A DNA stretch of 64,000 nt from Mobula hypostoma (lineage: Eukaryota), in assembly GCF_963921235.1 (NCBI RefSeq), contig NW_026948115.1, forward strand, positions 248,001-312,000, written 5' to 3'. Below are positions 9,001-61,642 of the stretch, in pieces. The translations under genes and the position numbers were made by a program. The notes under the pieces were generated by a model. It searched no databases and was not told where the DNA came from. It saw nothing but the letters and a program-made list of their open reading frames with translations. Each line of letters begins with the position of its first letter. The first letter of the stretch is position 1.

Positions 9001-10455
9001 TCCGCCTCCTCTCTCCACCCTCCCCACCCCTCCGTCTCCTCTCTCCACCCTCCCCCGTCTCCTCTCTCCCCTTCCCCTCCCCGCCGCCTCTTCTCTCCCC
9101 CTCCGCCTCCTCTCTCCCCCCTCCTGCTCCTCTCTCCCCTCTCCCCACAGTCTCCTCTCTCCCCCGCCTCCTCTCCGTCTCCTCTCTCCTCCCTCCCCTC
9201 CCCTCCCTCCTCTCTCCACCCTCCCCTCCCCTCCGTCTCCTCTCTCTCTCCCTCCGTCTCCTCTCTCCACCCTCACCTCCGCTCCGTCTCCTCTCTCCAC
9301 CCTCCCCTCCGCCTCCTCTCTCCCTACCTCCCCTCCTCCTCCTCTCTCCCCACCTCCCCTCCGCCTCCTCTCTTCCCCCTCTCCTCCCCTCCGTCTCCTC
9401 TCTCCCCCTCCCCTCCCCTCCGTCTCCTCTCTCCCCCCTCCCCTCCACTCCGTCTCCTCTCTCCACCCTCCCCTCTGTCTCCTCTCTCCGTCTCCTCTCT
9501 CCACCCTCCGCCTCCTCTCCCCCCTCCCCTGCCCTCCCCTCCGCATCCTCGTCTCCTCTCTCCACCCCCCCTCCGTTTCCTCTCTCCCCCCTCCGCTNNN
9601 NNNNNNNNNNNNNNNNNNNNNNNNNNNNNNNNNNNNNNNNNNNNNNNNNNNNNNNNNNNNNNNNNNNNNNNNNNNNNNNNNNNNNNNNNNNNNNNNNNNN
9701 NNNNNNNNNNNNNNNNNNNNNNNNNNNNNNNNNNNCCCCCTCCCCTCCGTCTCCTCTCTCCACCCTCCCCTCTCTCCGTCTCCTCTCTCCCCCCTCCCCT
9801 CCCCTCCATCTCCTCTCTCCACCCTCCCCTCCCCGCCGACTCCTCTCTCCACCCTCCCCTCCCCTCCGTCTTCTCTCTCTCCCCCTCCGTCTCCTCTCTC
9901 CACCCTCCCATCCACTCCGTCTCCTCTCTACACACTCCCCTCCCCTCCGTCTCCTCTCTCCCCACCTCCCCTCCGCCTCTTCTCTCCCCCCTCCCCTCCA
10001 CTCCGTCTCCTCTCTCCTCCTCCCCTCCCCTCCGTCTCCTCTCTCCCCGCCTCCTCTCCGTCTCCTCTCTCCCCCTCCCCTCCCCTCCATCTCCTCTCTC
10101 TACCCTCCCCTCTCTCCACCCTCCCCTCTCCACCGTCTCCTCTCTCCACCCTCCCCCTCTCCGTCTCCTCTCTCCCCCCTCCCCCCTCGCCTCCTCTCTC
10201 CCCTCTCCCCACCGTCTCCTCTCTCCCCCGCCTCCCCTCCGTCTCCTCACTCTCCCCCCTCCCCTTCCCTCCGTCTCCTCTCTCCCTTCTCCCCTCCCCT
10301 CCGTCTCCTCTCTCCCCCCTCCCCTCCCCTCCGTCTCCTCTCTCTCCCCCCTCCCCTCCCCTCCGTCTCCTCTCTCCCTTCTCCCCTCCGTCTCCTCTCT
10401 ACCCCTCCCCTCCCCTCCCCTCCGTCTCCTCTCCCCCCCTCCATCTCCACTCCCT
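1..10455. repeat. CT-rich minisatellite (core ~25 bp CTCCACCCTCCCCTCCGTCTCCTCA) filling the intron upstream of the class I alpha3 exon; drifts to almost pure pyrimidine toward the acceptor
   Basis: Hundreds of direct copies are visible. The array begins before position 1 and ends ~75 bp before the acceptor at 10529-10530. Confidence 0.98.
9598..9735. other. Assembly gap (138 N) inside the minisatellite
   Basis: Run of n characters. Confidence 1.
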
Positions 10456-10530
10456 CTGTGCCTTCACCCTCTCCTATCACCCTACTCCACTTCTTGCCCC
10501 CACTCACTGCCTCTTTCTCCCCCACCCCAG

Positions 10531-10794
10531 ATCCCCCCAAAGTCTCGTTCACCGCCTCCAAGGATGGCCGCCACCTCTCCTGTGTGGCCACTGGCTTCTA
10601 CCCTCAGTCCATCGACGTGACTATTCTGCGGGACGGACGGATCCTGGGGGAGACCCATTCCCACGGGATCCTCCCCAATCACGACAACAGCTACCAGCTG
10701 ACCAGGACGGTGCGGGTGGAGCCCACGGACACAGCAGAGTTCTCCTGTCGGGTGGAACACCGGGGTCTCCCTGAGCCCCTCGTCCTGTTCCTGG
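10531..10794 (+). CDS. UAA: MHC class I heavy chain alpha3 (Ig C1-set) exon
   Basis: Acceptor ccccag| and donor G|gtaaga, 264 bp, phase 1-1. Translation DPPKVSF..LSCVATGFYPQSIDV..PNHDNSYQL..FSCRVEHRGL has both Ig cysteines, GFYP, and the PNxDxSYQ and CxVxH motifs. The UAA name is inferred from the tail and TAP linkage; alpha1/alpha2 are outside the window. Confidence 0.92.
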
Positions 10795-11060
10795 GTAAGA
10801 GACGCTCACCAGTGGGGCGGTACACGGGCAGTGAAAGTGAGGGGGCTTGGCTGACCACAGGCCCAGGGCTGGGACACTGTTGACCTCTGGTCCAAGAGCA
10901 CAGTGAGGGGTCACTGTTGACCACAGGCCCAGGGTTGGGCAAAGGGAGGAATCCGTGTTTCTGAGACAGGGTGGGGGGCTGTGGGTGGGGTTGGTGAAGG
11001 AGAATCGGGGTTATCTCTGTCTCTGTCACTGATGTGACTGTTTCTCTGAATCACCAATAG

Positions 11061-11162
11061 ATCTGAAGCCCAACTCCATCCCGATCTTGATCATCGCTAT
11101 AGTTGTGGTCCTGGTGATCCTGGTGGTGGTCATCGCTGTTGGTATTGCCTACAAAAAGAAAG
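11061..11162 (+). CDS. UAA: MHC class I connecting peptide/transmembrane exon
   Basis: aatag| ... G|gtagga, 102 bp, phase 1-1; DLKPNSIPILIIAIVVVLVILVVVIAVGIAYKKK (hydrophobic stretch then basic stop-transfer). Confidence 0.92.
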
Positions 11163-12193
11163 GTAGGACTGGAGGGAGTTGGACTATTCCCCTGGGGAAG
11201 GGGGCTTGGGCAGTGTGTGTCCTCCTGGCATTCCTCAGCAAATCCCAACCCAGCACCCTTGTGTTTCTACACCCAAGGTGCCCACATTCAACGCTGCCTG
11301 TCTTCAACCCCACCATTCCCCACCTCTTTTCCTTCTCCCATGAGAACAGTTTCCTCTTCTTAACTGTCGGTAATGTGTCAACCTCGACACCACCCCCAGC
11401 GGTGTTCCACTCACGCCCCTGACATTCACCCTCTGTACTTTCTTTCAATCAACCTCACAAGGATGTTCTTTGGTATTAGACGTTTCTTTCCTGCTTAAAG
11501 CCAAAGCTGGTTGTCCATGTTATCTAAACCTCTGATCATCTTATAGAGTAACGGTCACAATTCCCCAGTTCGAGAGTCGTTGGGTCAGACTGTGGAATTA
11601 GTCCCTTGGACACGACCTACCATTGCTGATCACATACTTGCACACTCTGATCCCATTTCCTTGCCCTCTCTACCTTGGTGATTCAGATGCCTGTCTAGAT
11701 CTATCTTCAATGTTGTGAGAGTCTGTCTTCACTGCTCCGTCAGTGTGTTTGATTCCAGCCATCTTCTGGGGCAGGGTGTGTGAAATATTCTTTCCTCTGG
11801 TCACTTCCAGTGATCTTTCTCCTCACTGACAGATTCTGATCTTGGTCTCCTCTGCTCCGGGAAATCAGTTCCTCCTACCTGCCCCACCTGAGCCTCTCAT
11901 TACTGTGTGCATCCATACCTGGTGAACCTGACCAGGGTCAGGGTCAGTATTAGAGTAAATGGTCACTCCAAACCTCCCATTGACCACTCTGTCACACTCC
12001 AGCTTTGTTCTGTCTCATGGCCTTGCAATGAGTTGGGGCACCTGGTGATCCTGTTGGATGTGTCTCCTTTCACAACTTGTACCTTGAGTTCTGTTTGATT
12101 GGAATTCAGAGCTCACTGGGCAGGAGATGAATCTATCTGGTTATATGCTGGGGATGTGGGACTGTTCTCACTGACTGTCTCTGTGTTTTACAG

Positions 12194-17739: not shown

Positions 17740-18270
17740 AAGTTGTCCTATTTCTAATCATGGGGTTCCTTCACTCAGCCTGTTTCTGTTCCGTGTTATC
17801 AAAGCTTCTACAGTCCAGTGTTATTCTCCCTTCAATATTACTCTGATCCCCTGTTTCTGCTTCTGGAACAGTGTGTGTGTGTGTGGTGGGATTGACATGT
17901 GCCCGAGGGTCAGGTTTGTCACATTACCTGGCAGTCTTACACCACTCCTCCATGGATCCAACGTTATCCGTAGCTTCTCCTGTGGCTGTAACTGAATTGC
18001 CTTTCCTCCTGTATTTTCACCCCAGGTGGAATGTATAACTGGTGTGGGTTCTACATCTGTTCCATAAATGTTACCCCCTGTCTCTCTGCTCTCAGGCCTT
18101 GTAACCACGTCTTCCCACCTTTTATACACACCACACTCCTCACACCTTCACGATTTTCTTTGTTTACTTTGGGGCCAGAGTTTCTGATCAAAGTGTGCAA
18201 TATCCCGACTCTGCAGGACACTGACACGGTCTTTAAGCCTAGAAACAGACTCTCCAGACCACTATGTCTG
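17740..18270 (+). pseudogene. Candidate decayed TAP-family TMD fragment (5' piece of the TAP2-like pseudogene)
   Basis: Weak motif hits in the expected order across frames: SMDPTL..SPVA (~SxDTTL..SVA), KVCN..LQ (~KVYN..HQ), NRLSR (~NSLAR). Spacing is imperfect. Confidence 0.35.
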
Positions 18271-18296
18271 TCCTAATCATTAATGACCAATCCACA

Positions 18297-19085
18297 TTAT
18301 TCCCATTCACTGTCACCTGGTCCATAACCTTCTCTGTCTTGGTTATTCAAGTGCTTCTCAAGGTATTTCCTAAACATTGTGAGTCTGTCCCTCCACCATC
18401 CCCCAGGTAGTATGTTCCAGGTTCCAAACTCTCTACCCTCCGTGTGAACATTCTTCCTCAGATCCCCTCTAAACCTCTCCACCATTTCCTGAACCCCATC
18501 TCTCTAGTTTCAGACACATTTGCCATGGGCAGGTTTCAAATATGGACGACCCTGCATTTGCCTTCCTCATCACCATCTCTCCTTGCAAATTGACCTTTAC
18601 GGAAGCCTGCACGAGCACTTCCAAGTCCCTCTGCATTTCGGACTTTCGGCCGTGAGTGTGACACCCCATTCCTCACTGCCCTGTGTGTGAACCCTCCTCC
18701 CAAACTGCCCGTGTGTGACCTTTCCTCCCCCTGCCCTCAGCCGGTGTGTAATACTTCAGAACATAAGAAGGAGCAGGAGTCGGACATCTGGCCGTCAAGC
18801 CTGCTCCACCATTGAATAAGATCATGCCTGATCTGACCATGGACTCATCTCCACCAACCTGCCTTTTACCCAGAACCCTTAGTTCCCCTACTGTGCAAAA
18901 AATCTATCTGTCCTTGTCTTAAATATACTTACTGAGGTAGCCTCCACTGTTTCATCAGGCAGAGAATTCCACAGATTCACCACCCTCTGGAGAAAGCAGT
19001 GGTTGCATCTCCATCCTAAATCTCTCCCAAATCTTGAGTTTATCCCCTAGTTCTAGTCTCACTTATCAGTGGAAACAACTTTCCT
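18297..19085 (-). mobile_element. Two degenerate CR1 3' fragments
   Basis: Remnants of FRGDLRKN..F and the CR1 3' UTR at ~18300-18650 and ~18760-19085. Confidence 0.65.
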
Positions 19086-19099
19086 GCCTCTATACGTTC

Positions 19100-20736
19100 C
19101 ATACATGTTAGTAGGGAAGTGGTGTTAGGTAAATTGAAGGGATTGAAGGCAGATGAATCCCCAGGGCCAGATGGTCTGCATCCCAGAGTGCTTAAGGAAG
19201 TAGCTCAAGAAATAGTGGATGCATTAGTGATAATTTTTCAAAACTCGTTAGATTCTGGACTAGTTCCTGAGGATTGGAGGGTGGCTAATGTAACCCCACT
19301 TTTTAAAAAAGGAGGGAGAGAGAAACCGGGGAATTATAGGCCGGTTAGCCTAACGTCAGTGGTGGGGAAACTGCTGGAGTCAGTTATCAAAGATGTGATA
19401 ACAGCACATTTGGAAAGTGGTGAAATCATCGGACAAAGTCAGCATGGATTTGTGAAAGGAAAATCATGTCTGACAAATCTCATAGAACTTTTTGAGGATG
19501 TAACTAGTAGAGTGGATAGGGGAGAACCAGTGGATGTGGTATATTTGGATTTTCAAAAGGCTTTTGACAAGGTCCCACACAGGAGATTAGTGTGCAAACT
19601 TAAAGCACATGGTACTGGGGGTAAGGTATTGATGTGGATAGAGAATTGGTTGGCAGACAGGAAGCAAAGAGTGGGAATAAACGGGACCTTTTCAGAATGG
19701 CAGGCAGTGACTAGTGGGGTACCGCAAGGCTCAGTGCTGGGACCCCAGTTGTTTACAATATATATTAATGACTTGGATGAGGGAATTAAATGCAGCATCT
19801 CCAAGTTTGCGGATGACACGAAGCTGGGTGGCAGTGTTAGCTGTGAGGAGGATGCTAAGAGGATGCAGGGTGATTTGGATAGGTTAGATGAGTGGGCAAA
19901 TTCATGGCAGATGCAATTTAATGTGGATAAATGTGAGGTTATCCACTTTGGTGGCAAGAACAGGAAAACAGATTATTATCTGATGGTGGCCGATTAGGAA
20001 AAGGGGAGGTGCAACGAGACCCGGGTGTCATTGTACACCAGTCATTGAAAGTGGGCATGCAGGTACAGCAGGTGGTGAAAAAGGTGAATGGTATGCTGGC
20101 ATTTATAGCGAGAGGATTCGAGTACAGAAGCAGGGAGGTACTACTGCAGTTGTACAAGGCCTTGGTGAGACCACACCTGGAGTATTGTGTGCAGTTTTGG
20201 TCCCCTAATCTGAGGAACGACATCCTTGCCATAGAGGGAGTACAAAGAAGGTTCACCAGATTGATTCCTGGGATGGCGGGACTTTCATATGAAGAAAGAC
20301 TGGATGAACTGGGCTTGTACTCGTTGGAATTTAGAAGATTAAGGGGGAATCTTATTGAAACATATAAAATCCTAAAGGGATTGGACAGGCTAGATGCAGG
20401 AAGATTGTTCCCGATGTTGGGGAAGTCCGGAACGAGGGGTCACAGTTTAAGGATAAAGGGGAAACCTTTTAGGACGGAGATGAGGAAAAACTTCTTCACA
20501 CAGAGAGTGGTGAATCTGTGGAATTCTCTGCCACAGGAAACAGTTGAGGCCAGTTCATTGGCTATATTTAAGAGGGAGTTAGATACGGCCCTCGTGGCTA
20601 CAGGGGTCAGGGGGTATGGAGGAAAGGCTGGTACAGGGCTCTGAGTTGGATGATCAGCCATGATCATAATAAATGGCGGTGCAGGCTCGAAGGGCCGAAT
20701 GGCCTACTCCTGCACCTATTTTCTATGTTTCTATGT
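19100..20736 (+). mobile_element. 5'-truncated young CR1 (copy C), RT domain
   Basis: ORFs 19119-19997 and 20009-20644 (SPGPDG, NYRPVSLTS, QHGF, FQKAFDKV, GVPQGSVLGP, FADDT); TTCTATGT-type tail. Confidence 0.95.
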
Positions 20737-20883
20737 CTTTTTGAAAATGTCTTTGAAAGTCCACTGTTCCTCAACCGTCCCACTATATAGCCTGCATTCC
20801 CAGTCTGTACTGGCCAAATTCTCCCTCTTCATTGTTTAGGCACAATACACTGGTTTTCCATCGAATTATTGCACCCTCTATTT

Positions 20884-21955
20884 CAGTGGTCGCCATCGAC
20901 CGGTCGATCTTTGAGACTTTCCCAGTAGATCCCGAAAAAAATGAAAAATAAATAAATACACAAATGCTGTGGTAATGTGAGCATTATAAACATAAGTAAT
21001 ACTGATTAGTGGTAATTTAGCAATATTCGGGCTACTGAAAGCTGTCTGTAAGGAGAGATTGTTTCCGGGTCGCGGGGTTTTGGTTCTGTTCTTTCTGCCC
21101 AGTGCGCATGTGTATAGCTCCCCCGCCATGCACCGCGGTAGAAAAGACCGGAAGTAAAACCCCGCAACGCGGAAACAACCTCACTTTACAAACGGCTTTC
21201 CGTAGCCGCGTGGCGGGAGTATTGCTATATTACCATTATCCTAATTTGTATTAACTTATCTTTATAATGTTCACATTACAACACTTCTCCCCGTTCAAAT
21301 TCCAACACTCCCCAAATGTAAATAATTGGGAAACAAAAAACAGTGCTGTCATTATCCTGAAACTTACACTAGTGTCTCAGTAACAGTTTACCAACACAAA
21401 ACACCTGAAACACGTGGCAGATTCAACATTCAGTCTAACAAAGGAAACTCTCCAGTCAAATATTCAGTCTGTCAGGAGGTTTGCGAGGGCGCTGTGCTGC
21501 CACAGATGAAAATTATGAAATCTAAGTACAGGAGCTGTCTTACTGACAAACACCTCACAGACTGTCTCAGACTGGCTGTCTGTAGTTATCAGCCACATTT
21601 CAGGGAACTAGCAGAAAGTATTCAGCCCCAGTCATCACACTGAGTGCAACAGTCAATTTTTATTCATTTATTTTTCGTGTTGAAATAAAATTAAATAATG
21701 AAACATAGAATTAAAGGTGTTGTAATGTGAGCATTATAAAAATAAGTAATACTAATTAAGATAATGGTAATATAGCAGTACTCCCGCTACAGAAAGCTGT
21801 TTGTAACGAGATGTTGTTTCCAGGTTGCAGGGTTTTACTTCCGGTCTTTTCTGTCCGGTGCGCATGTGTGTGACTAAACGATTTAGTAGGTCGATCTTGC
21901 CTTTCACTAAGGCCGAGGTAGGGGATCTTGGGCTTAAAAAGGTTGGCGACCACTA
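20884..21955 (+). mobile_element. hAT (Charlie-like) DNA transposon deletion derivative
   Basis: TIRs CAGTGGTCGCCA.C / GTTGGCGACCACTA; 8-bp TSD CTCTATTT / CTCTATTG; transposase C-terminal remnant MKIMKSKYRSCLTDKHLTDCLRLAV. Confidence 0.88.
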
Positions 21956-21969
21956 CTCTATTGGTATGA

Positions 21970-22980
21970 GAAGCTGAGTCATACTGTGATCACTCTTTCT
22001 AGGAGGATTCCTAACTAAAAGATCCCTAATTTTACCTGCATCATCGCACAGGACCAGCCATAAGATAACACATTCCCTTGTGGGTTCAGTAACATGCTGT
22101 TGAAGAAAGCTATCACGGATGCATTCTATGAAACCTCTTCAAGACTGCCTCGACCAACTTGATTTACCCAATCTATGTGCAAGTTAAAGTCCCCCACGAT
22201 AACCGCTGTTCCCTTCTTATATGCTTCAGATATTTCTCTGTTTAATGCCTGTGGTACTGTAATGGCTGATAGACGACTCACACCAGATATTTTTCCCCAT
22301 TATCTCCACCCAGATGTATTCAATATTCTACTCCTTGGATCTTATATTGTTTCTCACTGTCGCCCTGATCGCATCTTTAATTCATGCACTACCCCACCTC
22401 CCTTACCTTCCTGCCTGTCGTTCCATATTACCAGGTATCCTTGGATATTTACTTCCCAATCACGTTTCTGTAATGGCCAATAAGTCATACCCCTTTGTAG
22501 TGATTTGTGCCACAGGTTCACTGACCTTATTTCGAATACTACGGGCATTCAGATGAATTGCCCTTACACTCATTGTGCTTTTAAAATCTTGTAAACTTTT
22601 TGTCTTTTGCATTTGACCTTTCTTTACTCCACTCTTACTTTTATCTTTTGCTCTTTATTTAACTTTATCCACACTTTGCTCTTTTTCTTTATCGATACTT
22701 CTCCAATCTGTTGGACTCCACCCCACCCCACTGTTTATTTTAAAGTCCTATCCACAGCCCTGGTTATGCGATTCGCTCGGATCCAGGTCCCATCACAGTT
22801 CAGGTGAAGCCTGTCCCATTGGTACAGCTCCCTCCTTCCCCAATACTGGTGCCAATTCCCCATGAATTTAAACCCACTTCTCCCATTCCAATCCTTGAGT
22901 AACACATTTAACTCTCTAACCTTCTTGACCCTACGCCAATCTGCACGTGGCTCGGGTAGTCATCCAGAGATTACCACCTT
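21970..22980 (-). mobile_element. CR1 fragment (end of ORF1 and APE endonuclease)
   Basis: Remnants of VAITE.W, GGGV and VMGDFN motifs on the minus strand. Confidence 0.75.
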
Positions 22981-23385
22981 TTGGTTCTGCTTTTTAATTA
23001 TGTTTCTGTGCTCCTACACCTCCCTGGGATTCCCATCCAGCAGGACGGGGGCACACAGGTGGTCCTCCCCTCCACCCCCCAGCTGGGGCTCCCACCAGGG
23101 TTGTCCCCTGTCTGCTCCTCACCTCAAAAAACACATTCTGCGAAACAGAAGAAATTGGGAGAATTAAACAGAACTTGCAGCGATGTGATAGACAGTAAGT
23201 GTGATGTGGGATGAAAGGGTACATCAGTCAGCCCTCACTCGGACACCTCTCCCCACTTCTCAAACTGCTCCAGTCTGAGACACAGAGAGGTTACTGGAGT
23301 TCAGTTCTGATACCACACTGCTCAGCCAGGAATACTGTACCAAGCTGCTGCGTCTTCAGTATTTGCATTCACCTCTGGCCACTAC

Positions 23386-23931
23386 TTTAGATTTTTTTAG
23401 ATTATGAGGACACTCAGTCCTCGTTTATTGTCATTTAGAAATGCATGCATTAAAAAATGATACAATGTTCCTCCAGAATGATATCACAGAAACACAGGAC
23501 AAACCAAGACTAAAACTGACAAAACCACATAATTATAACATATAGTTACAACAGTGCAAAGCAATACCGTAATTTGGTAAAGAGAAGACCATGGGCACGG
23601 TAAAAAACAAATCTCAAAGTCCCGATAGCCCCATCATCTCACGCAGACGGTAGAACGGAGAAACTCTCTCTTCCATGAACCTCCAAGCGCCGCCAACTTG
23701 CCGATGCAGCACCATTGGAAGCATCCGACCGCAGCGGAGTCTGAGTCCATCCGAAAACTTCGAGCCTCCAACCAGCCCTCCGACACCGAGCACCATTCTC
23801 CTCACAGCGCTTCGACCCTGCCCGGCCGCCAAGCAACAAGCAAAGCCGAGGACTCGGGGCCTTCCCCTCCGGAGATTCTGGATCACACAGTAACAGCGGC
23901 AGCAAAAGAGGCATTTCAGAAGTTTCTCCAG
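23386..23931 (-). mobile_element. Non-autonomous retroposon with AATCT/polyA tail, copy 1 (5'-truncated)
   Basis: Clearly homologous to 48632-49295; the minus strand ends AATAAACGAGGACTGAGTGTCCTCATAATCTAAAAAAA. Confidence 0.7.
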
Positions 23932-24599
23932 AGTTGAATGTCTTGTGCTGGAGGGCATACATTTGATGTGAAAGGGGGAATGCACATAGGAGATGTGTTG
24001 GGGGTGTGGTGTTCAAGGCATTTTTACACAGAGCGGTGAGATGCCTGTATTGAGCCACCATGGTTGATGGTGGAGGCGAATCTGATAGATGTGTTTAAGT
24101 TCACAGACAGACACATGGATGTGCCGGAATGGGGGAATGTGGACCAAGTTCCAGTGGAAGGGTTTGGGCATCATTAGTTTAATTGGTTCAACACACATTC
24201 ATGGCCAAAAGTGAGGCTGGGGTGGGAGTGGGGGTAGGGGACAGGCTCGAAGCCTTGAAGTGGGGGAAGGTCATGCTGAGGGCAGTGAGGTGAGGGGTCA
24301 AATTGTGAGTAGGGTGTGGTGGGGTCTCACGAGGTAGTGAAGGGTCAGTGGAGGGGTCACACACGAGGTAGTGAAGGGTCAGTGTTGGGGTCTCACAAGG
24401 GTTAGTGTTGGGGTCTCACACGGGATGTTCTGGGGTGTCACATTGGGTGTGAGGGTGGGTTGTCACAAACTGGGACACCATCAGCTCCAGTGGTGGAAGC
24501 ATGATGTACCCAGTGAAAGTAATGATCAAACACAAGCAGACACACAATTGTCACACAGCCTGGGATAGCAATGGAGTGTAATGGACTGGAATGTATTCA

Positions 24600-25350
24600 A
24601 GGATGGTGATGGATTGCCAAACCATCATAGAAAGTTCCAGAGTACCATAACCACAAGAGCAGTATTAGCAGACTGTCATCTATTAATTGGCTGTAATCAC
24701 AGAAGCCAATAGAAAGAATGGTGTCTGGACCGGAGAGTAATGTTATAATCAAAGTGTGTGATGGAATCTTACCCCATTACACACACAAAGAGCTGATTGT
24801 ATCATTGCTGACCCTACTGGATTAAAGAGTGTCCCAGTACTCCCCCACTCTTGTAACCCTGTTCCCATCACCCCATTCTGTCTGTGATGGATTCACCCCT
24901 CGATTACATTATCCTCATTTCCCCCATTTAGCCACAGCCCTCGTGCTTGCATTCAGCAGGATCTGCCCCCTTAGACCTACACATTTACACATTGTTTGCC
25001 TTCGTTTGGTCTCTGACAGTGACAGATCCTATCCCCGTTCCTGGATCTGGGTCTCCAGGGGTTTAAACTGTCCTGTTTAACAACAGCCGCCAGTCTGTCC
25101 TCTCAAACACTGCGTGGAGAAGCTGGCCCGGCTTCGGCAATCTCCCTGACTCTATCAAACCCCGCCCCACGTTCAGCTGGAATTCTCTTCTCACGACTCT
25201 GAAAAGCAGGTTCTGTGCGCTCTGAGGTTGGTTTAATCCAGAGGACAGAAACGCTTTTGATGGGGCTTTTAGCATCCTGTAGGAAGGTCGACCTTCCAAC
25301 TTCCAGATGACACGAGCAGCTCCACAACAATCAGAATCCACCTCCATAGG
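24600..25350 (+). pseudogene. Decayed TAP-family fragment: TMD end, A-loop, Walker A region
   Basis: GGATTGCCAAACCATCATAGAAAGTTC at 24611-24637 (~GLQTIRSF). One frame carries YQTPPHVQL at 25153-25179 (~YPTRPDVQV), an ALVG-like remnant, F*HPVG at 25267-25284 (~FYQPTG) and HLHR at 25339-25350 (~YLHR), at near-canonical spacing. Confidence 0.6.
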
Positions 25351-25959
25351 GATTTTTATCCCCAACGGTCTGATGGGGGGCCCTAACTCTGTTTGCATTG
25401 AATCCACCCAGTTGAAACAACAATTAACTCAGCAGTTATTTTACTAACTGGAAGGGAAGGCTGACTCCGTTCAAGAGCTTCGACAAAACAGAAAGCTTTA
25501 TTCACTCGTTTACACGCTAATGTTATCTACACGCACCAGTACAGAGAAAATATGCAATCTGTTAGTCTGCTTAATTAGTGTACATGGCATTCTTCCAGTA
25601 ACCGAACCACCTGCTTGTCTGCAGTTTGTCTCATAATCAATGTCCGAAGGCATAATATTGCAGGAGCGCCTTTGGCAACACACCATGACTCAAAGTTCAA
25701 GGTAGATTCGTTATCAAAGTACACATTTATCAGCTTCTTCCACCAGGCCATCAGACTGATTAACTCACGCTGATCTGAGTGTATTTCTACGTTACAGTGA
25801 CTGTTCTATTTATTATAAATTACTATGATTGCATATTGCACATGTTGACGGAGATGTAACGTAAAGATTTTTACTCCTCATGTAGGTGAAGTCAATTCAA
25901 ACATACAACCCAGAGATTCATTTTGTGGTGGGCGTATTCGATAAGTCTATTGAAAAATG

Positions 25960-28900
25960 ACCCATGAAAGATGCCCAACGTGACTGTTCAACCAGAGTAC
26001 AGGAGACAACAAACAGCAAACACAAAAAAAGAAATAATTAGCAATAAGTTTTTAAAAAAATCACAATAAATGTCCAGAACATGAGAGAAATAGACCTTGA
26101 AAGTGAGTCCATTTATTATTGTGGAGCGTTTCAAGGACGTGGCAAGTGAATTTACTCCCCCTCTTGCGAGAGCCCGGTGGCCGAGGGGAGGAAACCGGGT
26201 GGCGTGAGTGCTGAGGCCGCGGAGCCTCCCTCCCGATGGCAGCGGCCAGAAGAGAATATGTCCGGGCTGGTGGGGGTCATCATCCCTGGGACAGTGGTTC
26301 ATGTAGATGTGCACAATGGTGGGGAGGGCTTTGCCCGTGATGGACTGGGCCATGTCTTTGTAGGGTTTTCTACCCAAGGGCATGATGTTTCCATGCCATG
26401 CTGTGATGCGGCCAGTCGACAAACTCCCCGCCGTATACTATACACAGAAACATAGAAACATAGAAAATAGGTGCAGGAGTAGGCCATTCGGCCCTTCGAG
26501 CCTGCACCGCCATTTATTATGATCATGGCTGATCATCCAACTCAGAACCCCGCCCCAGCCTTCCCTCCATACCCCCTGATCCCCGTAGCCACAAGGGCCA
26601 TATCTAACTCCCTCTTAAATATAGCCAATGAACTGGCCTCAACTGTTTCCTGTGGCAGAGAATCCCACAGATTCACCACTCTCTGTGTGAAGAAGTTTTT
26701 CCTAATCTCGGTCCTAAAAGGCTTCCCCTCTATCCTCAAACTGTGGCCCCTTGTTCTGGACTTCCCCAACATCGGGAACAATCTTCCTGCATCTAGCCTG
26801 TCCAATCCCTTTAGGATTTTATACGTTTCAATAAGATCCCCCCTCAATCTTCTAAATTCCAACGAGTACAAGCCCAGTTCATCCAGTTTTTCTTCTTATG
26901 AAAGTCCTGCCATCCCAGGAATCAATCTGGTGAACCTTCTTTGTACTCCCTCTATGGCAAGGATGTCTTTCCTCAGATTAGGGGACCAAAACTGCACACA
27001 ATACTCCAGGTGTGGTCTCACCAAGGCCTTGTACAACTACAGTAGTACCTCCCTGCTCCTGTACTCGAATCCTCTCGCTATAAATGCCAGCATATCATTC
27101 GCCTTTTTCACCGCCTGCTGTACCTGCATGCCCACTTTCAATGACTGGTGTATAATGACACCCAGGTCTCGTTGCACCTCCCCTTTTCCTAATCGGCCAC
27201 CATTCAGATAATAATTTGTTTTCCTATTTTTGCCACCAAAGTGGATAACTTCACATTTATCCACATTAATTTGCATCTGCCATGAATTTGCCCACTCACC
27301 CAACCTATCCAAGTCACCCTGCATCCTCTTAGCATCCTCCTCACTGCTAACACTGCCACCCAGCTTCGTGTCATCCGCAAACTTGGAGATGCTGCATTTA
27401 ATTCCCTCATCCAAGTCATTAATATATATTGTAAACAACTGGGGTCCCAGCAGTGAGCCTTGCAGTACCCCACTAGTCACCGCCTGCCATTCTGAAAAGG
27501 TCCCGTTTATTCTCACTCTTTGCTTCCTGTCTGCTAACCAATTCTCCACTCACACCAATACCTTACCCCCAATACCGTGTGCTTTAAGTTTGTACACTAA
27601 TCTCCTGTGTGGGACCTTGTCAAAAGCCTTTTGAAAATCCAAATATACCACATCCACTGGTTCTCCCCTATCCACTCTACTAGTTACATCCTCAAAAAAT
27701 TCTATGAGATTCGTCAGACATGATTTTCCTTTCACAAATCCATGCTGACTTTGTCCGATCATTTCACCGCTTTCCAAATGTGCTGTTATCACATCCTTGA
27801 TAACTGACTCCAGCAGTTTCCCCACCACCGACGTTAGGCTAACCGGTCTATAATTCCCCGGTTTCTCTCTCCCTCCTTTTTTAAAAAGTGGAGTTACATT
27901 AGCCACCCTCCAATCCTCAGGAACTAGTCCAGAATCTAACGAGTTTTGAAAAATTATCACTAATGCATCCACTATTTCTTGGGCTACTTCCTTAAGCATT
28001 CTAGGATGCAGACCATCTGGCCCTGGGGATTTATCTGCCTTCAATCCCTTCAATTTACCTAACACCACTTCCCTACTAACATCTATTTCCCTCAGTTCCT
28101 CCATCTCACTGGACCCTCTGTCCCCTACTATTTCTGGAAGATTATTTATGTCCTCCTTAGTGAAGACAGAACCAAAGTAATTATTCAATTGGTCTGCCAT
28201 GTCCTTGCTCCCCATAATCAATTCACCTGTTTCTGTCTGCAGGGGACCTACATTTGTCTTTATCAGTCTTTTCCTTTTTACATATCTATAAAAGCTTTTA
28301 CAGTCCGTTTTTATGTTCCCTGCCAGTTTTCTCTCATAATCTCTTTTCCCCTTCCTAATTAAGCCCTTTGTCCTCCTCTGCTGAACTCTGAATTTCTCCC
28401 AGTCCTCAGGTGAGCCACTTTCTCTGGCTAATTTGTATGCTTCTTCTTTGGAATTGATACTATCCCTAATTTCTCTTGTCAGCCACGGGTGCACTACCTT
28501 CCTTGATTTATTCTTTTGCCAAACTGGGATGAACAATTGTTGTAGTTCATCCATGCAACCTTTAAACGCTTGCCATTGCATATCCACCGTCAATCCTTTA
28601 AGTGTCATTTCCCAGTCTATCTTAGCTAATTCACGTCTCATACCTTCAAAGTTACCCCTCTTTAAGTTCAGAACCTTTGTTTCTGAATTAACTATGTCAC
28701 TCTCCATCTTAATGAAGAATTCCACCATATTATGGTCACTCTTACCCAAGGGGCTTCTCACGACAAGATTGCTAATTAACCCTTCCTCATTGCTCAAAAC
28801 CCAGTCCAGAATAGCCTGCTCTCCAGTTGGTTCCTCGATATGTTGGTTCAAAAAACCATCCCGCATACATTCCAAGAAATTCTCTTCCTCAGCATCTTTA

Positions 28901-29810
28901 CCAATTTGGTTCACCCAATCTACATGTAGATTGAAGTTACCCATTATAACTGCTGTTCCTTTATTGCACACATTTCTAATTTCCTGTTTAATACCATCTC
29001 CGACCTCACTACTACTGTTAGGTGGCCTGTACACAACTCCCACCAGCGTCTTCTGCCCCTTAGTGTTACGCAGCTCTACCCATATCGATTCCACATCTTC
29101 CCGGCTTATGTCCTTCTTTTCTATTGCGTTAATCTCTTCTTTAACCAGCAACGCCACCCCACCTCCCCTTCCTTCATGTCTATCCCTCCTGAATATTGAA
29201 TATCCCTGAACGTTGAGCTCCCATCCCTGGTCACCCTGGAGCCATGTCTCTGTGATCCCAACTATATCATAATTATTAATAACAATCTGCACTTTCAATT
29301 CATCCACCTTATTAAGAATGCTCCTTGCATTGACACACAAAGCCTTCAGGCGCTCTTTTACAACTCTTTTAGCCCTTATACAATTATGTTGAAAAGTGGC
29401 CCTTTTTAATGCTTGCCCTGGATTTGTCGGCCTGCCACTTTTACTTTTCTCCTTAGTACTTTTTGCTTCTACCCTCACTTTACACCCCTCTGTCTCTCTG
29501 CACTGGTTCCCATCCCCCTGTTTTGAACTAACCTCCTCACGCCTAGCCTCTTTAATTTGAAGCCCTTCAACGTCTCGCACGTCGCGCTGACTCTCCGCAA
29601 ACTCCTAAGGAAACATAGGATTTGCTGCGTATTCCCCGCAATCACCCAAATGCCAAGACAGCTCCTCCAAAATAACCAAGCAATATAAAGTTGCTGACCC
29701 TCCCCACCTCTCATCTTCCGATGAGGAGCGGCTGATGGATTTCTGCTTTCCTTCTCCTGAAGTCAATGATCAGCTCTTAGGTCTTGCTGTCATTGAGTAA
29801 GAGGTTGTTT
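25960..29810 (-). mobile_element. Rex1/Babar fragment split by CR1 copy A (parts 25960-26446 and 29559-29810)
   Basis: GRITAWHGN..LPSGGRLR on the left part; KELIIDFRR-like remnant on the right part; the halves join at GAA. Confidence 0.75.
26447..29558 (-). mobile_element. Near-complete CR1 ORF2 (APE plus RT; copy A), one frame with two nonsense codons
   Basis: ORFs 27550-29580, 27037-27549 and 26542-26871 are all in one frame, with stops TGA 27550-27552 and TAG 27037-27039. The 3' tail reads (GAAACATA)n on +. Confidence 0.95.
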
Positions 29811-29869
29811 CAGTGTTTGTTGGAGAGAAATACCATTTTGTTTCGACAAGTCAAGTACATTTCCACACC

Positions 29870-30070
29870 AGACACACTTACAGTATTCTCACCCTGACAC
29901 ATTTACAGTATTCTCACCCTGACACATTTACAGTATTCTCACTGACACACTTACAGTATTCTCACCCTGACACACTTACAATATTCTCACCCTGACACAC
30001 TTATAGTGTTCTCACCCTGACACACTTACAGTATTCTCACTGACACCCACAGTTTATCAGTATTCTCTCC
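29870..30070. repeat. ~23-25 bp minisatellite (CAGTATTCTCACCCTGACACACTTA), ~8 copies
   Basis: Direct repeats visible, ending just upstream of the pseudo-exon acceptor. Confidence 0.9.
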
Positions 30071-30089
30071 CCCGGTAGACTGTAAGCAG

Positions 30090-30287
30090 ATGGCCTTGCT
30101 GGGACAGGAGCCAGTACTGTTCAGTCGGCCTTGGTGGGAGAAGAACTAATACTGTTGATACTGTCGGTCGATCGGGTACAGCATCCGCTACAGCCTGCAG
30201 AACTGCCCACAAGCAGCCATCACAGCGGCAGCTGAGAGAGCCAATGCACAGGCATTAATCGAGAGAATTGATCACGAATATCAACGG
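30090..30287 (+). pseudogene. TAP-family (TAP2/ABCB9-like) Q-loop pseudo-exon
   Basis: cag|MALLGQEPVLFSR[39-nt insert]SIGYSIRYSLQNCPQAAITAAAERANAQALIERIDHEYQ|gtaaca aligns to TAP2 VVSVGQEPVLFSGSVRNNIAYGLQSC...AAAQAAHADDFIQEMEHGIYT. It is 159 nt without the insert, versus 160 nt for the human TAP2 exon as I recall it. The insert carries stops. Confidence 0.85.
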
Positions 30288-30424
30288 GTAACAGAACTAT
30301 CCTTGTCACAGTCACATGGGACACACTCAATGTTTGTGACTCTGGTAACACTGGCGGTAAACAGCAAGGACCCAGTGCAGAACATCTGTGACACACGATT
30401 GACACGGAATCGTGGAGCGCCGGG

Positions 30425-30600
30425 ATATGTGGGATACTCGGCCCAGCAAGGTCTCCGCACAGGCCGATTGCCTGGTGGCCATACACCTCGGAGTTGACTA
30501 TGCCGGCACAGCAGCCGGTGACTGGACACAGCCTGAGAATAGACAGGCTCTGCTGGAGGCGGACTGTTTTTAATTCCATTCACGGCCTCATTGTCTGCAT
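30425..30600 (+). pseudogene. Candidate heavily decayed TAP signature / Walker B / H-loop region
   Basis: ATGTGGGA (~DVG), SKVSAQ at 30445-30462 (~SQLSAGQ), LDT..ENRQAL (~LD..CEQAL), RTVFNSIHGL at 30560-30589 (~RTVLVIAHRL); several frameshifts are needed. Confidence 0.45.
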
Positions 30601-30959
30601 TTGAAATGTTAAAGGCGGTGCAAGGTCCCGCCTGCCTCATGGTGAGATAAAAAAGGATGCTACGAAGAACAACAGGCGAGCCCAGGATAATCTGTCCCGG
30701 CCAATTTTAATCCCATCACAAACATATCTTACCAAACTGTCTTTATTACCTCACAGATCACTCATCACAACATTTGAAATTGTAAAGACATGATAGGAAT
30801 ACAAAACAAGGACTTCTGCATTTTATGTGTCTTGCACAAGATTGTTAAAGAACCGTGAACATTTCCACGTAATCGTCCAGCCCAGCCCAGCCCAGGAGCC
30901 GAGCCGAGCCGAGCCGTCTGAAACCGGAGAGGAAACCGTGCTCACCCCGAGCAAAACAA

Positions 30960-31023
30960 GAACCTTTCCGGAGATAATCTGCCCAGCAACTGGTGATGCG
31001 GCGGCAGGGAGCGCCCTGATTGC
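30960..31023 (+). promoter_or_regulatory. MHC-type S-X1-X2-Y module
   Basis: S AACCT 30961-30965; 16 bp; X1 CCCAGCAACTGGTG 30982-30995 (13/14 to CCYAGNRACNGATG); X2 TGATGCG (~TGACGCG); 20 bp; Y CTGATTGC 31016-31023 (~CTGATTGG). It lies in a CpG-retaining stretch. Confidence 0.7.
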
Positions 31024-31103
31024 TCCGCTGGAAATAACTCCAGTCCGTGTGTTTTAATGTGAACAGCGGCGGTGAGGGGGGAGGGGGGGGAGAGTATCAG
31101 CAA

Positions 31104-52090: not shown

Positions 52091-52336
52091 TCACGACTCC
52101 ACCTCCGTTTCCACCAGCCCCTCCTCCGATTGCTCAGTCCCTGCGTCCGGGCTGTGCACGTGGAGCAGCCGGTGGTAACTGCTGCCCTTCTCCTGCAGCT
52201 GCTGGGGCGTCCCCTCCTCTACCACCTTCCCCCCCTCCAGCACCACGATCCGATCGGCTCTCTCTATCGTACTCGGCCGGTGTGCGATTACCAGCACGGC
52301 ACGCCCCTCAGCTCGACTGTACACCGACTGGTGGAC
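52091..52336 (-). CDS. TAP1: TAP1 last coding exon (H-loop and C-terminus)
   Basis: Pyrimidine tract plus ccgcag|GTC, phase 0; [47 protein letters not shown]...ES-TGA. Confidence 0.85.
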
Positions 52337-53601
52337 CTGCGGTGACAGAGAGACGGGTTAGAGAGAGTGGGGCGGGGAGCAGAGGAGAAAGGGGGGAAGA
52401 GGAGAGACCGGGAGGGGAGTGTAGGAGGGGCAGGGAGAGAGCTCGGGAGAGGAGTGTGAGAGTGGCAGGAAGGAAGGTACGGGGGGGGGGAGTGAGGCAT
52501 AGAGAGAGGCATAGGGATAGTCTGGAGGGAGAGTGAGGTGGGGAGAGAGTGATATGCATAGAGTGACATGAAGAACAAAAGGAGGAGTCAGAAAATGGTG
52601 AGAGAGAGAGAATGAGATATGCAGGGTGGTGAAAGTGACAATGGTCACAGTGTGTACAGGATGAATGGACCGACAGATACAGAGTGGACAGGGATCAGAG
52701 AGACAGGATGGGAAAGAAACTCAGGAGAGAGAGCAATGGAGACAGGGAAACAAAAGCAGATGCTGGAAATCCAGAACCACACACACAAAATGCTGGAAAC
52801 TCAGCAGGTCAGGCAGCATCTGTGGAAATGATGCTACACACTGTCCTTACACATCTGGAGAAGAAGGATGCTTACGTGAGAATGCTGTTCTTGGACTACA
52901 GTTCAACATTCAACACTATAATTCCCTCCAGACTCGACAGGAAGCTCAGAGACCTCGGCCTTCACCCTGCCTTGTGCAGCTGGATCCTGGACTTCCTGTC
53001 AGATCGCCGGCAGGTGGTAAGAGTGGGCTCCCTCACCTCCAACCCTCTGACTCTCAACACAGGAGCCCCTCTGGGCTGTGTACTAAGCCTCCTCCTTTAC
53101 TCTCTGTATACCCACGATTGTGTTGCCACCCACAGCTCCAATCTGCTAATTAAATTTGCTGATGACACTACATTGACTGGCCTAATCTCAAATAATAACA
53201 AGGTAGCCTACAGGGAAGTCATCACATTGACCCAGTGTGTCAAGAAACCAACCTCTCCCTCAATGTAGCAAAAACAAAGGAGCTGGCTGTGGATTGCAGG
53301 AGGAATGGAGATGAGCTAACCCCGATTGACATCAATGGATCTGGGGTTGAGAGGGTGAATGGCTTTAGGTTCCTCTCACGTGGTCTGTACATACCAACTG
53401 TGTGGTGAAAAGAGCATAACAGTGCCTCTTCCACCTCAGACAGTTGAGGAAGTTTGGTATGTCCCCAAATCCTAAAAACTTTCTATAGGAGCACGATTGA
53501 GAGCATCCTGACTGGTTGCATCACTGCCTGGTATGGGAACTGTACTTCCCTCAATTGCAGGGCTCTGCAGAGAGTGGTGTGGACAGCCCAGCGCATCTGT
53601 A

Positions 53602-56600
53602 CACAAGAAATAGGAGCAGGAGTAGGCCATCCAGCCCATCGAGCCTACTCCACCATTCAATAAGAACATGGCTGATCTGTCCGTAAACTCAGCTCTATCT
53701 ACCTGCCCTTTCCCCATAACCCTTAATTCCCCTACTATGTAAAAATCTATCTAAATGTATCTTAATTGTATTTAGTGAAGAAGCCTCAACTGCTTCCCTG
53801 GGCAGAGAATTCCACAGATTCACCACTCTCTGGGAAAAACAGTTTCTCCTCATCTCCGTCCTAAATCTTCTCCCCTCAATCTTGAGGCAATGTCCCCTAG
53901 TTCTAGTCTCACCTACCAATGGAAACAACTTTCCTACTTCTATCTTATCTATCCCTTTCAAAATTATGTATGTTTCTATAAGATCCCCTCTCATTAGAAC
54001 ATAGAACAGTACAGCACATTTCAGGCCCTCTGGCCCACAATGTTGTTCCGACCCTCAAACCCTGCCTCCCATATAACCCCCCACCTTAAATTCCTCCATA
54101 TACCTGTCTAGTTGTCTCTTAAATTTCACTAGTGTATCTGCCTCCACCACTGACTCAGGCAGTGCATTCCACTCTCTGAGTAAAAAACCTTCCTCTAATA
54201 TCCCCCTTGAACTTCCCTCCCCTTACCTTAAAGCCACGTCCTCTTATACTGAGCAGTGGTGCCCTGGGGAAGAGGCGCTGGCTATCTACTCTATCTATTC
54301 CTCTTAATATCTTGTATACCTCTGTCATGTCTCCTCTCATCCTCCTTCTCTCCAAAGAGTAAAGCCCTAGCTCCCTTAATCTCTGATCATAATGCATACT
54401 CTCTAAACCAAGCAGCATCCTGGCAAATCTCCTCTGTACCCTTTCCAACGCTTCCTCTTATGTCCTATAGTGAGGTGACCAGAACTGGACACAATACTCC
54501 AAGTGTGGCCTCACCAGAGTTTTATAGAGCTGCATCATTACATTGCGACTCTTAAACTCTATCCCTCGACTTATGAAAGCGAACATCCCATAAGCTTTCT
54601 TAACTACCCCATCTACCTGTGAGGCAACTTTCAGGGATCTGTGGACATGTACCCCCAGATCCCTCTGCTCCTCCACACTACCAAGTATCCTGTCATTTAC
54701 TTTGTACTCTGTCTTGGAATTTGTCCTTCCAAAGTGTACCACCTCACACTTCTCCAGGTTGAACTCCATCTGCCACTTCTCAGCCCACTTCTGCATCCTA
54801 TCAATGTCTCTCTGCAATCTTTGACAATCCTCTACACTACCCACACCACCACCAACTTTTGTGTTGTCTACAAACTTGCCAACCCACCCTTCTACCCCCA
54901 CATCCAGGTCGTTAATAAAAATCACGAAAAGTAGAGGTCCCAGAACAGATCCTTGTGGGACACCACTAGTCACAACCCTCCAATCTGAATGTACTCCCTC
55001 CACCACGACCCTCTGCCTTCTGCAGGCAAGCCAATTCTGAATCCACCTGGCCAAACTTCCCTGGATCCCATGTCTTCTGACTTTCTGAATAAGCCTACCG
55101 TGTGGAACCTTATCAAATGCCTTACTAAAATCCATGAAGATCACATCCACTGCACTACAATCATCTATATGCCTGGTCACCTCCTGAAAGAACTCTATCA
55201 GGCTTGTTAGACATGATCTGCCCTTCACAAAGCCAAGCTAACTGTCCCTGATCAGACCATGATTCTCTAAATGCTCATAGATCCTATCTCTAAGAATCTT
55301 TTCCAACAGCTTTTCCACCACAGACGTAAGGCTCACTGGTCTATAATTACCCGGACTATCCCTACTACCTTTTTTGAACAATTCTTCGGAATTCTTCTGA
55401 ATTCCAGAGAGTATAGTCCCAGGCGACTCAATCTCTCCTCAAAGGTTAACCCCTTCATCTCTGGAATCAACCTGGTGAACCTCCTCTGTACTGCCTCCAA
55501 AGCCAGTATATTCTTCCTCAAGTATGTAGACCAGAACTGCACACAGTACTCCAGGTGCGGCCTCAACAGTACCCTGTATAGTTGCAGCATGACCTTCCTG
55601 CTCTTGAATTCAATCCCTCTAGCAATAAAGGCCAACATTCCGTTTGCCTTCTTAATAACCTGTTGTACCTGCAAGCCAACTTTTTGCGATTCATGAACAA
55701 GCACTCCCAAGTCCCTCTGCACAACAGCATGCTGCAATCTTTCACCATTTAAATAATAATCTGCTCTTCTATTATTCCTTCCAAAGTGGATGATCTCGCA
55801 TTTACCAACGTTATATTCCATCTGCCAGACCTTGGCCCACTCACTTAACCTATCTATATCCCTCTGCAGACTCTCCACATCCTCTGTACAATTTGCTTTT
55901 CCACTAAGTTTAGTGTCATCAGCAAATTTTGCTACACTACACTCAGTCCCCTCTTCCAAATCATCAATGTAAATGGTAAACAGCTGCAGGCCCAGCACCG
56001 ACACCTGCAGCACCCCACTCACCATTGACTGCCAACCGGAGAAACACCCATTTATACCAACTCTCTGCCTTCTATTGGTTAACCAATCCACTATCCATGC
56101 CAATACACTTCCTCCGACTCCATGCATCCGTATCTTATTTATAAGTCTCTTGTGCGGCATCTTATCGAACGCCTTCGGGAAATCTAAGTATACGACATAC
56201 ACCCGTCCCCCCCTATATCCACTGCACTCATTATGTCCTCAAAGAACTCCAGTACGTTTGTCAAACAGGACCTGCCCTTTCTGAATCCATGCTGCGTCTG
56301 TCTATGGAACCCCTCCTTTCTAAATGTCTTGCTATTTTTTCCTTAATGACAGCTTCAAACATTTTCCCTGACTACAGATGTTAAGCTAACTGGCCTATAG
56401 TTGTCTGTCTTTTGCCTACATCCTTTTTTAAAAAGTGTCTTCCATTCTGCTGGGACTTGCCCAGAGTCTAGAGAATTTTGGTAAATGATTACCAACACAT
56501 CTACTGTAACCTCCGCCAATTCCCTCAGCACCCTGGGATGCATCCCATCAGGACCAGGGGACTTATCTACCTTCAGGCCCTCTAGTTTGCTCATCACTGT

Positions 56601-58003: not shown

Positions 58004-58458
58004 TCTGTAGATGTGAACTTCCCACTACTCAGGACATTTACAGAGACAGTTGTGTAAAAGGGCCTGAGGGATCACTGGAGACCTGAGTCACCCCAACCAC
58101 AAACTATCCAGCTGCTACCATCCGGGAAACGGTACCACAGCATAAAGGCCAGGACCAACAGGCTCCGGGACAGCTTCTTCCACCAGGACATCAGACTGAT
58201 CAATTCATGCTGACACAATTCTATTTCTACGCTACATTGACCGTCCTATTGTACATACCACTTTTCACAAATTACTATAAATTGCACCTTGCACATTTAG
58301 ATGGAGACATAGTGTGAAGATTTTTACTCCTCATGTATGTGAAGCATATAAGTAATAAAGTCATTTCAATTCAGTCCAAGAGCCTTCTTGGAAAATGCCA
58401 GAATAAATCTCATAAGTAGCTCGGATTCACACTCCATGGCACTGGAGAGAGTGACCGT

Positions 58459-61636: not shown

Positions 61637-61642
61637 ACTCAC

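Follow-up and report, generated by a model that had tools for sequence, protein, structure and literature searches.

The window analysed here, a 64,000-nucleotide stretch of DNA from the ray Mobula hypostoma (contig NW_026948115.1, positions 248,001 to 312,000; G000:C15:248001-312000, on a scaffold, C15, of 322 kb), carries between a class I gene and a copy of TAP1 the broken remains of what was probably a second TAP2 gene. Two exons of its nucleotide-binding domain (NBD), those for the Q-loop and for Walker A, can still be recognised. We read this relic as a decayed, unprocessed TAP2 of the lineage that sharks, skates and sawfish possess (lineage 1, L1), a gene that once was the immediate downstream neighbour of the classical class I gene, the working TAP2 of the ray being of a different lineage (lineage 2, L2), and we would put the probability of this reading at about 0.72. 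The exon relics in the window are:

30090-30287, plus strand: Q-loop pseudo-exon of L1 TAP2, 159 nt plus a 39-nt insertion
30124-30162, plus strand: the 39-nt in-frame insertion in the Q-loop exon, a diverged tandem duplicate of its QEPVLF-coding segment
22990-23140, minus strand: Walker-A pseudo-exon, inverted relative to the Q-loop exon

Both strands of the window were searched by tblastn with 44 ABCB-family proteins and with 24 TAP2 proteins of elasmobranchs and other fish, by tblastn and blastn with the ray's own TAP1 and TAP2 exons as protein and as DNA respectively, and by scanning overlapping six-frame chunks with three hidden Markov model (HMM) profiles; a reversed-query control reached 23.5 bits, which sets the noise level. 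The Q-loop exon, whose translation contains …ALLGQEPVLF…, scored 27.2, 38.6 and 42.6 bits against the three ABCB/TAP2 profiles (42.6 with that of elasmobranch L1 TAP2) and matched TAP2 of the sawfish Pristis in tblastn with E = 2.6e-13, while all other plus-strand sequence of 17-31.5 kb scored 1.4 bits or less in the HMM scans. Both its splice sites are intact, the acceptor as ...AAGCAG/ATG (30089/30090) and the donor as CGG/GTAAC (30287/30288). The exon is interrupted by two in-frame stops (TAA at 30147 and TGA at 30156), both of which lie in the 39-nt insertion; this insertion derives from the preceding 32 nt and is absent, by alignment, from the functional exons and from the copy of the relic on C12 described below. 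The original prediction had recognised this exon correctly.

The neighbouring exon lies on the other strand. The best residual match of all the HMM profiles falls at 23075-23149 (minus strand), and blastn of the Walker-A relic against functional Walker-A exons gives E = 1.2e-13 and 3.4e-7 with 73-74% DNA identity; tblastn with the ray's own TAP1 exon gives E = 1e-4. The acceptor CAG is kept at 23141-23143 (…TCGCAG/AATGTG…), and the relic reads QNVFFEVRS…LVGAPAGG, then lesions, then VLLDGNPREV*EHR. The lesions comprise one stop, a frameshift, an 8-bp insertion and a 34-bp deletion in which the greater part of the LLQRFYQPQSGQ codons was lost; a dispersed repeat adjoins the 3′ end (repeat matches for 22942-22999). 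The functional Walker-A exons are:

L032:8528-8710, plus strand
L034:8439-8621, minus strand
L037:3481-3663, minus strand

The highest amino acid identity of the Walker-A relic is to the ray's own TAP1 (66%), slightly above the others. This exon is homogenised: the ray's own TAP2 and TAP1 share 92% of amino acids and 94% of nucleotides in it, and the own TAP2 agrees with Pristis L1 TAP2 at 93% of its amino acids, with merely 26-67% in the flanking exons. It looks like a gene-conversion tract joining TAP1 and both TAP2 lineages, batoid-specific residues (FEVRSGEVTALVG) included.

Both relic exons recur, once elsewhere on scaffold C15 and once on C12, where the copy lies between the class I genes of the main cluster (class I exons at C12:31.848-32.003 Mb):

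C15:127594-127969, minus strand: mirror copy of the Q-loop region, 99% identity
C15:134876-135176, plus strand: mirror copy of the Walker-A relic, 100% identity
C12:31902499-31902725, minus strand: copy of the Q-loop region, 80% identity
C12:31905520-31905642, plus strand: copy of the Walker-A relic, 74% identity

In all three copies the Walker-A exon precedes the Q-loop exon by a few kb and points the opposite way. Because this arrangement is common to all of them, the two relics appear to descend from one ancestral unit, in which the inversion would predate the duplications. The Q-loop exon on C12 has no 39-nt insertion and one stop, and a further exon follows 257 nt downstream (L041:1191-1319), reading ISEGRKQRIAIVRG…ILDKATSSLD; this third exon, with the signature and Walker B, is the only addition that C12 makes to the NBD set. 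Homology between the copies also extends through the introns, over ∼1.7 kb in all. The C12 copy is collinear with the plus strand of the window in three stretches, 25436-25744, 25903-26449 and 29559-30352 (in blastn of the reverse complement of L041, query 155-472 falls on 25436-25744 and query 465-1016 on 25903-26449), and from this collinearity we take the non-coding parts of these stretches to be remnants of introns:

25436-26449, plus strand: intron remnant upstream of the Q-loop exon, left of a long interspersed nuclear element (LINE), collinear with the C12 copy
26450-29558, minus strand: LINE in that intron, with a reverse transcriptase (RT)/endonuclease open reading frame (ORF) at 27550-29580, not present in the C12 copy
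29559-30089, plus strand: intron remnant directly upstream of the Q-loop exon, 72.6% identical to C12 over 814 nt
30288-30352, plus strand: first 65 nt of the downstream intron; homology to C12 ends at 30352

The LINE at 26450-29558 was inserted after the C15 and C12 copies had separated, since the C12 copy is without it and homology resumes at 29559. Similarly, as homology with the C12 copy breaks at 30352, the signature exon has been lost from the window copy. A 25-bp tandem repeat lies within the upstream intron remnant, at 29866-30040 (TRF). The LINE is one of an inverted pair of the same family (19101-20743, plus strand; 26443-28086, minus strand; 95-96% identity) that flanks 5.7 kb, the right-hand element being near full length with a 676-aa endonuclease/RT ORF (27550-29580). 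The same family also occurs in introns of the working TAP2; on its sequence it is young and possibly active. Recombination between such inverted LINEs was considered as the means by which the Walker-A exon was flipped and rejected, because the C12 copy runs collinear with the plus strand of the window on either flank of the LINE (26449/29559) and shares the inverted arrangement yet has no LINE there.

Between the Q-loop exons of C15 and C12 the DNA identity is 79.9% and dN/dS is 1.4 (53 codons, with a wide error), against a dN/dS of 0.23 between the working TAP2 and TAP1 exons. The former value is consistent with the TAP2 having died before the block of class I gene plus relic was duplicated. 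On C15 itself the duplication structure, which is read from search matches, places the relic region as a mirror image at 127.6/134.9 kb and 271.0/278.1 kb.

Assignment of the relic to a lineage depends on the tree of the intact proteins, many elasmobranch ‘TAP2-like’ sequences having come up in database searches. In the full-length tree the TAP2 proteins of sharks, skates and sawfish form a 100/100 clade that mirrors the species tree (L1), and the ray's own TAP2 together with those of Mobula and Hypanus (L2) stands outside it on a long stem. The tree built from the transmembrane domain (TMD) only also has L2 outside L1, grouped with coelacanth and amniote TAP2 (97/95). Identity of the own TAP2 to L1 is 57-61%; the approximately unbiased (AU) test rejects a position of L2 within batoid L1 (p = 1.3e-5) and does not reject monophyly of L1 plus L2 (p = 0.078). 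A database search with the Mobula TAP2a found no member of L2 beyond Mobula and Hypanus. The Q-loop exon of the relic agrees in amino acids with Pristis L1 TAP2 at 62% and with shark L1 TAP2 at 47-58%, compared with 42% for the own L2 TAP2, 39-40% for ABCB9 and 34% for the own TAP1, and at the DNA level it agrees with the resident TAP2 and TAP1 exons at 50-52% of positions. The C15 and C12 copies together (96 residues) form a clade (83/90) inside Pristis plus skates (98/99), and with both copies included the AU test disfavours a grouping with TAP1 (p = 0.012) and one with L2 (p = 0.044). The signature on C12, ISEGRKQR, matches the L1 motif (I/L)SAGQKQR and not the LSGGQ of L2 and TAP1. A search of the genome with Pristis TAP2 as query found no intact L1 gene, the matches being the resident genes, other ABCB genes and the relics; this search used a stricter filter and covered 200 contigs, and is thus not absolute. 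The claim that a dead TAP2, and not TAP1, ABCB9 or another ABCB gene, lies here was therefore borne out by the position of the relic in the batoid TAP2 clade and the rejection of TAP1. The description of it as an ancient duplicate TAP2 was right in that the gene is old and dead; it is not a duplicate of the resident TAP2, given 50-52% DNA identity to the resident exons and the 62% agreement with Pristis against 42% with the own protein.

Two further observations concern the lineages themselves. The working L2 TAP2 has a canonical LSGGQ (signature exon of gene A, see below, at L033:7869-8012), like the ray's TAP1, and L1 has SAGQ; judging from these motifs the asymmetry of the two ATP sites may differ between L1 and L2. 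Among bony vertebrates TAP2 departs from the species tree, coelacanth and amniotes grouping with L2 and lungfish and amphibians with L1 (support 80-97), which may hint at two lineages older than the split of cartilaginous and bony fish, or may reflect long-branch effects.

Beyond these exons little of the gene is left. No TMD exon was found above noise in the window by PF00664, the three HMMs, tblastn or exon DNA, and of the NBD motifs the window keeps the Q-loop and a disrupted, inverted Walker A, and lacks signature, Walker B and H-loop. Stops in the Q-loop exon, and a stop, a frameshift and a deletion in that for Walker A, leave no transporter-coding ORF. Six-frame pieces of 15-34 kb compared with the three ABC gene regions gave matches dominated by LINEs and endogenous retroviruses, and a Pfam scan of the stop-free pieces gave no match, the pieces being too short. 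Three TMD candidates, at 25062-25298 (plus strand, E = 0.06), 25320-25093 (minus strand, E = 0.32) and 26109-26002 (minus strand), were rejected as being at the level of reversed-query noise and absent from the HMM scans. A processed pseudogene was also rejected: the apparent read-through of the Q-loop exon is the 25-bp tandem repeat upstream and noise downstream, and the C12 copy has introns. The splice sites (30089/30090, 30287/30288 and the acceptor at 23141), the intron homology and the disabling mutations are those of an unprocessed pseudogene. The feature is accordingly much smaller than the original prediction had it. TMD motifs at ∼18 kb proved no better than background by tblastn, HMM or exon DNA; the motifs resembling GLQTIRSF, YPTRPDVQV, FYQP and YLHR at 24.6-25.35 kb (plus strand) do no better than the reversed-query level of 23.5 bits, and in a ‘HLHR…FYPQ’ string the elements are ordered and spaced unlike those of a TAP NBD. 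The signature- and H-loop-like remnants at 30.3-30.6 kb are likewise at noise level, and homology with C12 stops at 30352. Instead of three collinear plus-strand islands there is a single plus-strand exon whose neighbour is inverted. An isolated, duplicated Q-loop exon had been named as the outcome that would speak against a dead gene, and on the plus strand it is indeed the only exon that aligns; the occurrence together, in every copy, of exons 8 and 9 (and 10 on C12) is what sets the relic apart from that.

We suggest the following history. An orthodox elasmobranch-lineage (L1) TAP2 would have stood next to the classical class I gene, a short way downstream, and would have been cut down to exons 8-9 (8-10 on C12) by deletion, insertion of transposable elements (TEs) and one small inversion, with a LINE and tandem repeats now occupying the intron between the Walker-A and Q-loop exons. 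It would have been dead and rearranged already when the block of class I gene plus relic was duplicated, after which the Q-loop copies would have diverged neutrally. Peptide transport in the ray would be carried out by TAP1 and the L2 TAP2 encoded on the same scaffold, the relic having no present function. A fuller version, that the ancestor of the rays had both L1 and L2 as linked paralogues near class I, that these exchanged the Walker-A exon (with TAP1 also involved) by gene conversion, and that L1 then died, is put forward tentatively, at somewhat less than even odds; it would mean two ancient elasmobranch TAP2 lineages, L1 kept by sharks, skates and sawfish and L2 by myliobatiforms (this genome, Mobula, Hypanus).

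The main alternative is that no whole gene ever stood here. In that case a partial segment of an L1 TAP2, limited to its 3′ NBD exons 8-10, would have landed next to class I and been duplicated with it, and the true L1 gene would have disappeared from another site. Solely NBD exons are found in all three copies, the inversion of exon 8 shows early rearrangement of the segment, and the interval from the 3′ end of the class I gene to the relic is filled with TEs and holds no trace of exons 1-7. We nevertheless consider this unlikely. Next to class I is where a native TAP2 is expected, since every elasmobranch assembly studied has TAP2 near its one class Ia gene (PMC10751288); TE turnover and deletions (the LINE at 26.4-29.6 kb, the breakpoint at 30352) suffice to explain the loss of the other exons, and no other remnant of L1 was seen in the genome in the search with Pristis TAP2. 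It is scarcely credible that the fragments are a duplicate of the resident L2 TAP2 or TAP1 that came to resemble L1 by chance as it decayed. The Walker-A relic is indeed slightly nearest to the own TAP1, and the AU test against L2 is marginal on so short a sequence (p = 0.044-0.051), but random decay would not converge on the residues of another lineage (CPQAA.TAAAERANA.AFIERMDH), and two independently decaying copies, on C15 and C12, both fall within batoid L1. The gap between the Q-loop identities to Pristis L1 (62%) and to L2 and TAP1 (42% and 34%), the ∼50% DNA identity to the resident exons and the rejection of a TAP1 grouping tell against it as well.

Another suggestion starts from contigs of other individuals. 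In four further samples of the species these cover 30051-31044 at a depth of 7-15 and give nothing at 31.17-31.75 kb; in three of the four a junction leads from 31027-31044 back to 30051, and the island ends have no k-mers in common that could produce a graph artefact. The ∼1-kb island might on this basis be transcribed or amplified (in tandem or as a circle), and it and the S-X-Y-like module at 30960-31023 might together act as a regulatory or non-coding element. We regard this as very unlikely: the four small runs are not recorded as RNA, adjacent joints lack GT..AG, repeats dominate the depth as they do in low-coverage DNA, and the exon within the island has in-frame stops and evolves neutrally. 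In the search of sequencing runs no run labelled as RNA contained 30051-31044. The back-junction itself could be a tandem duplication, a circular molecule or an artefact. The piece at 30778-31060, which includes the S-X-Y-like module, has a third copy, 94% identical, at C15:145282-145561 and none on C12; as it lies beyond the breakpoint at 30352 and has no C12 copy, it does not form part of the ancestral TAP2 relic.

Several points weigh against the reading of the relic as a decayed L1 gene. No TMD exon occurs in any copy, and in the window there is no signature or H-loop exon either, so that a full-length ancestor at this site is inferred rather than demonstrated. The placement depends on 53-96 residues, and L2 is disfavoured by the AU test no more than marginally, at p = 0.044 when both copies are used and 0.051 for the window copy by itself. 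As the Walker-A exon is homogenised among L1, L2 and TAP1, the Walker-A relic cannot be assigned to any of the three on its sequence. The limits on the search for an intact L1 gene given above belong here too. Lastly, C15 carries near-identical duplicates, some mirror-image and some direct, that may be haplotype mis-joins, which leaves the copy number on this scaffold uncertain; alternatively they may be real large duplications.

The surroundings of the relic are as expected for TAP2. Whole-genome Pfam scans found three TAP-type genes on scaffold C15, and the exons of neighbouring genes within the window are listed with them:

C15:70.7-102 kb, plus strand: gene A, the working TAP2, of TAP2/ABCB9 type
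C15:157.3-180.6 kb, minus strand: gene B, TAP1
C15:300.1-317+ kb, minus strand: gene C, a TAP1 copy whose last exons are at 52.1-61.8 kb of the window
window 10458-11170, plus strand: class I alpha3 exon (C1-set, ∼10.5-10.8 kb) and transmembrane (TM) exon (∼11.1 kb), as ORFs
window 52127-61783, minus strand: last two exons of gene C within the window, the gene continuing past it
window 52127-52336, minus strand: H-loop exon of gene C
window 61640-61783, minus strand: signature/Walker-B exon of gene C

Gene A matches TAP2/ABCB9 among solved structures and is 91% identical to ‘TAP2a’ of Mobula birostris and 90% identical to a Hypanus sabinus protein; it is the functional TAP2 that the original prediction had proposed to locate, on the same scaffold and of L2 type. 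Genes B and C are near-identical, and their type of TMD exon is that of TAP1 (human TAP1 57 bits, ABCB9 37, TAP2 27 against solved structures). Upstream of the window, PF00129 marks the alpha1/alpha2 exons of the class I gene at C15:223898-224164 and 247317-247580. The relic thus sits between the class I gene (exons at 10.5-11.2 kb) and the minus-strand TAP1 copy (52.1-64 kb), as had been predicted; the TM exon of class I precedes it by ∼10-18 kb on the same strand, which is the linkage to class I expected of a TAP2. Tight linkage of TAP2 and class I is the non-mammalian arrangement. Elasmobranch assemblies have one class Ia gene closely linked to psmb8/9 and tap1/2, in a study whose species did not include myliobatiform rays (PMC10751288).

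Some features of these neighbours deserve mention in their own right. The first 10,400 positions of the window hold ∼10 kb of very C-rich, strand-skewed low-complexity repeat (GC skew −0.88), which sits in the class I intron between alpha2 and alpha3, yields 1000-aa Pro/Ser/Leu ‘ORFs’ and contains the sole assembly gap of the window (N run at 9598-9735). TAP1 copies B (C15:157.3-180.6 kb, L034-L036) and C (window 52.1-64 kb plus L037) have the same orientation and exons that are 99.4% identical. In both the frame of the signature exon stays open well beyond the donor (window 61379-61640 and L034:5830-6660, both minus strand), entering a minisatellite that encodes PDPHP(N/D)S(P/Q)SV repeats, with open lengths of 142 and 332 aa; the number of repeats differs between B and C, and the minisatellite is probably intronic.

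The closest known counterpart of the relic is elasmobranch TAP2 (ABCB3; the Pristis pectinata ‘antigen peptide transporter 2-like’ protein, P0173, and those of skates and sharks), which it resembles in exon boundaries, position beside class I and 62% identity in the Q-loop exon, the C12 copy sharing the SAGQ-type signature. Unlike these genes the relic is broken by stops, frameshift, indels and an inverted exon, consists of two to three NBD exons with no TMD, and is nonfunctional. Among solved structures a stop-free piece of 41 residues from the Q-loop exon best matches human TAP2, in the TAP1/TAP2 heterodimer (PDB 5u1d and related), weakly (E = 0.31), and a two-exon remnant permits no structural inference. 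Unprocessed (unitary-type) pseudogenes and gene fragments are common in vertebrate major histocompatibility complex (MHC) regions. The relic shares with them its splice sites, intron remnants, lesions, TE insertions and co-duplication with class I; it differs from spare-copy MHC pseudogenes in that its parent lineage has no intact copy as far as searched, which amounts to loss of the lineage.

Two very old, divergent versions of a class I-linked antigen-processing gene in one animal group are known from other systems. Xenopus has ancient dimorphic lineages of PSMB8, TAP and class Ia, and the A and F types of PSMB8 are paralogues in sharks and alleles in some bony fish (PMC5824609). The ray TAP2 lineages resemble these cases in age and divergence and differ from them in that one lineage is present solely as a pseudogene, whose scaffold also carries the working gene of the other, and allelic segregation is not implied. 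In the literature consulted, the coverage of which was incomplete, we found neither the relic nor a pair of TAP2 lineages in cartilaginous fish described.

As an MHC pseudogene fragment the relic is ordinary in kind. What is informative is that it appears to be the orthologue of the TAP2 of other cartilaginous fishes, lying dead beside class I, in an animal whose working TAP2 is about as distant from L1 as coelacanth TAP2 is. Its presence would then document physically that a single genome once held both deep TAP2 lineages at linked loci, and it bears on how the dimorphic lineages of ectotherms (PSMB8, TAP, class Ia) arise, persist and replace one another. If the two-lineage reading is true, TAP2 would offer a parallel to the PSMB8 A/F dichotomy, with replacement of one lineage by the other beside class I. 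It would also make co-evolution of class I and TAP testable, in the form of whether the peptide-binding groove of myliobatiform class Ia shifted with the change of TAP2 lineage.

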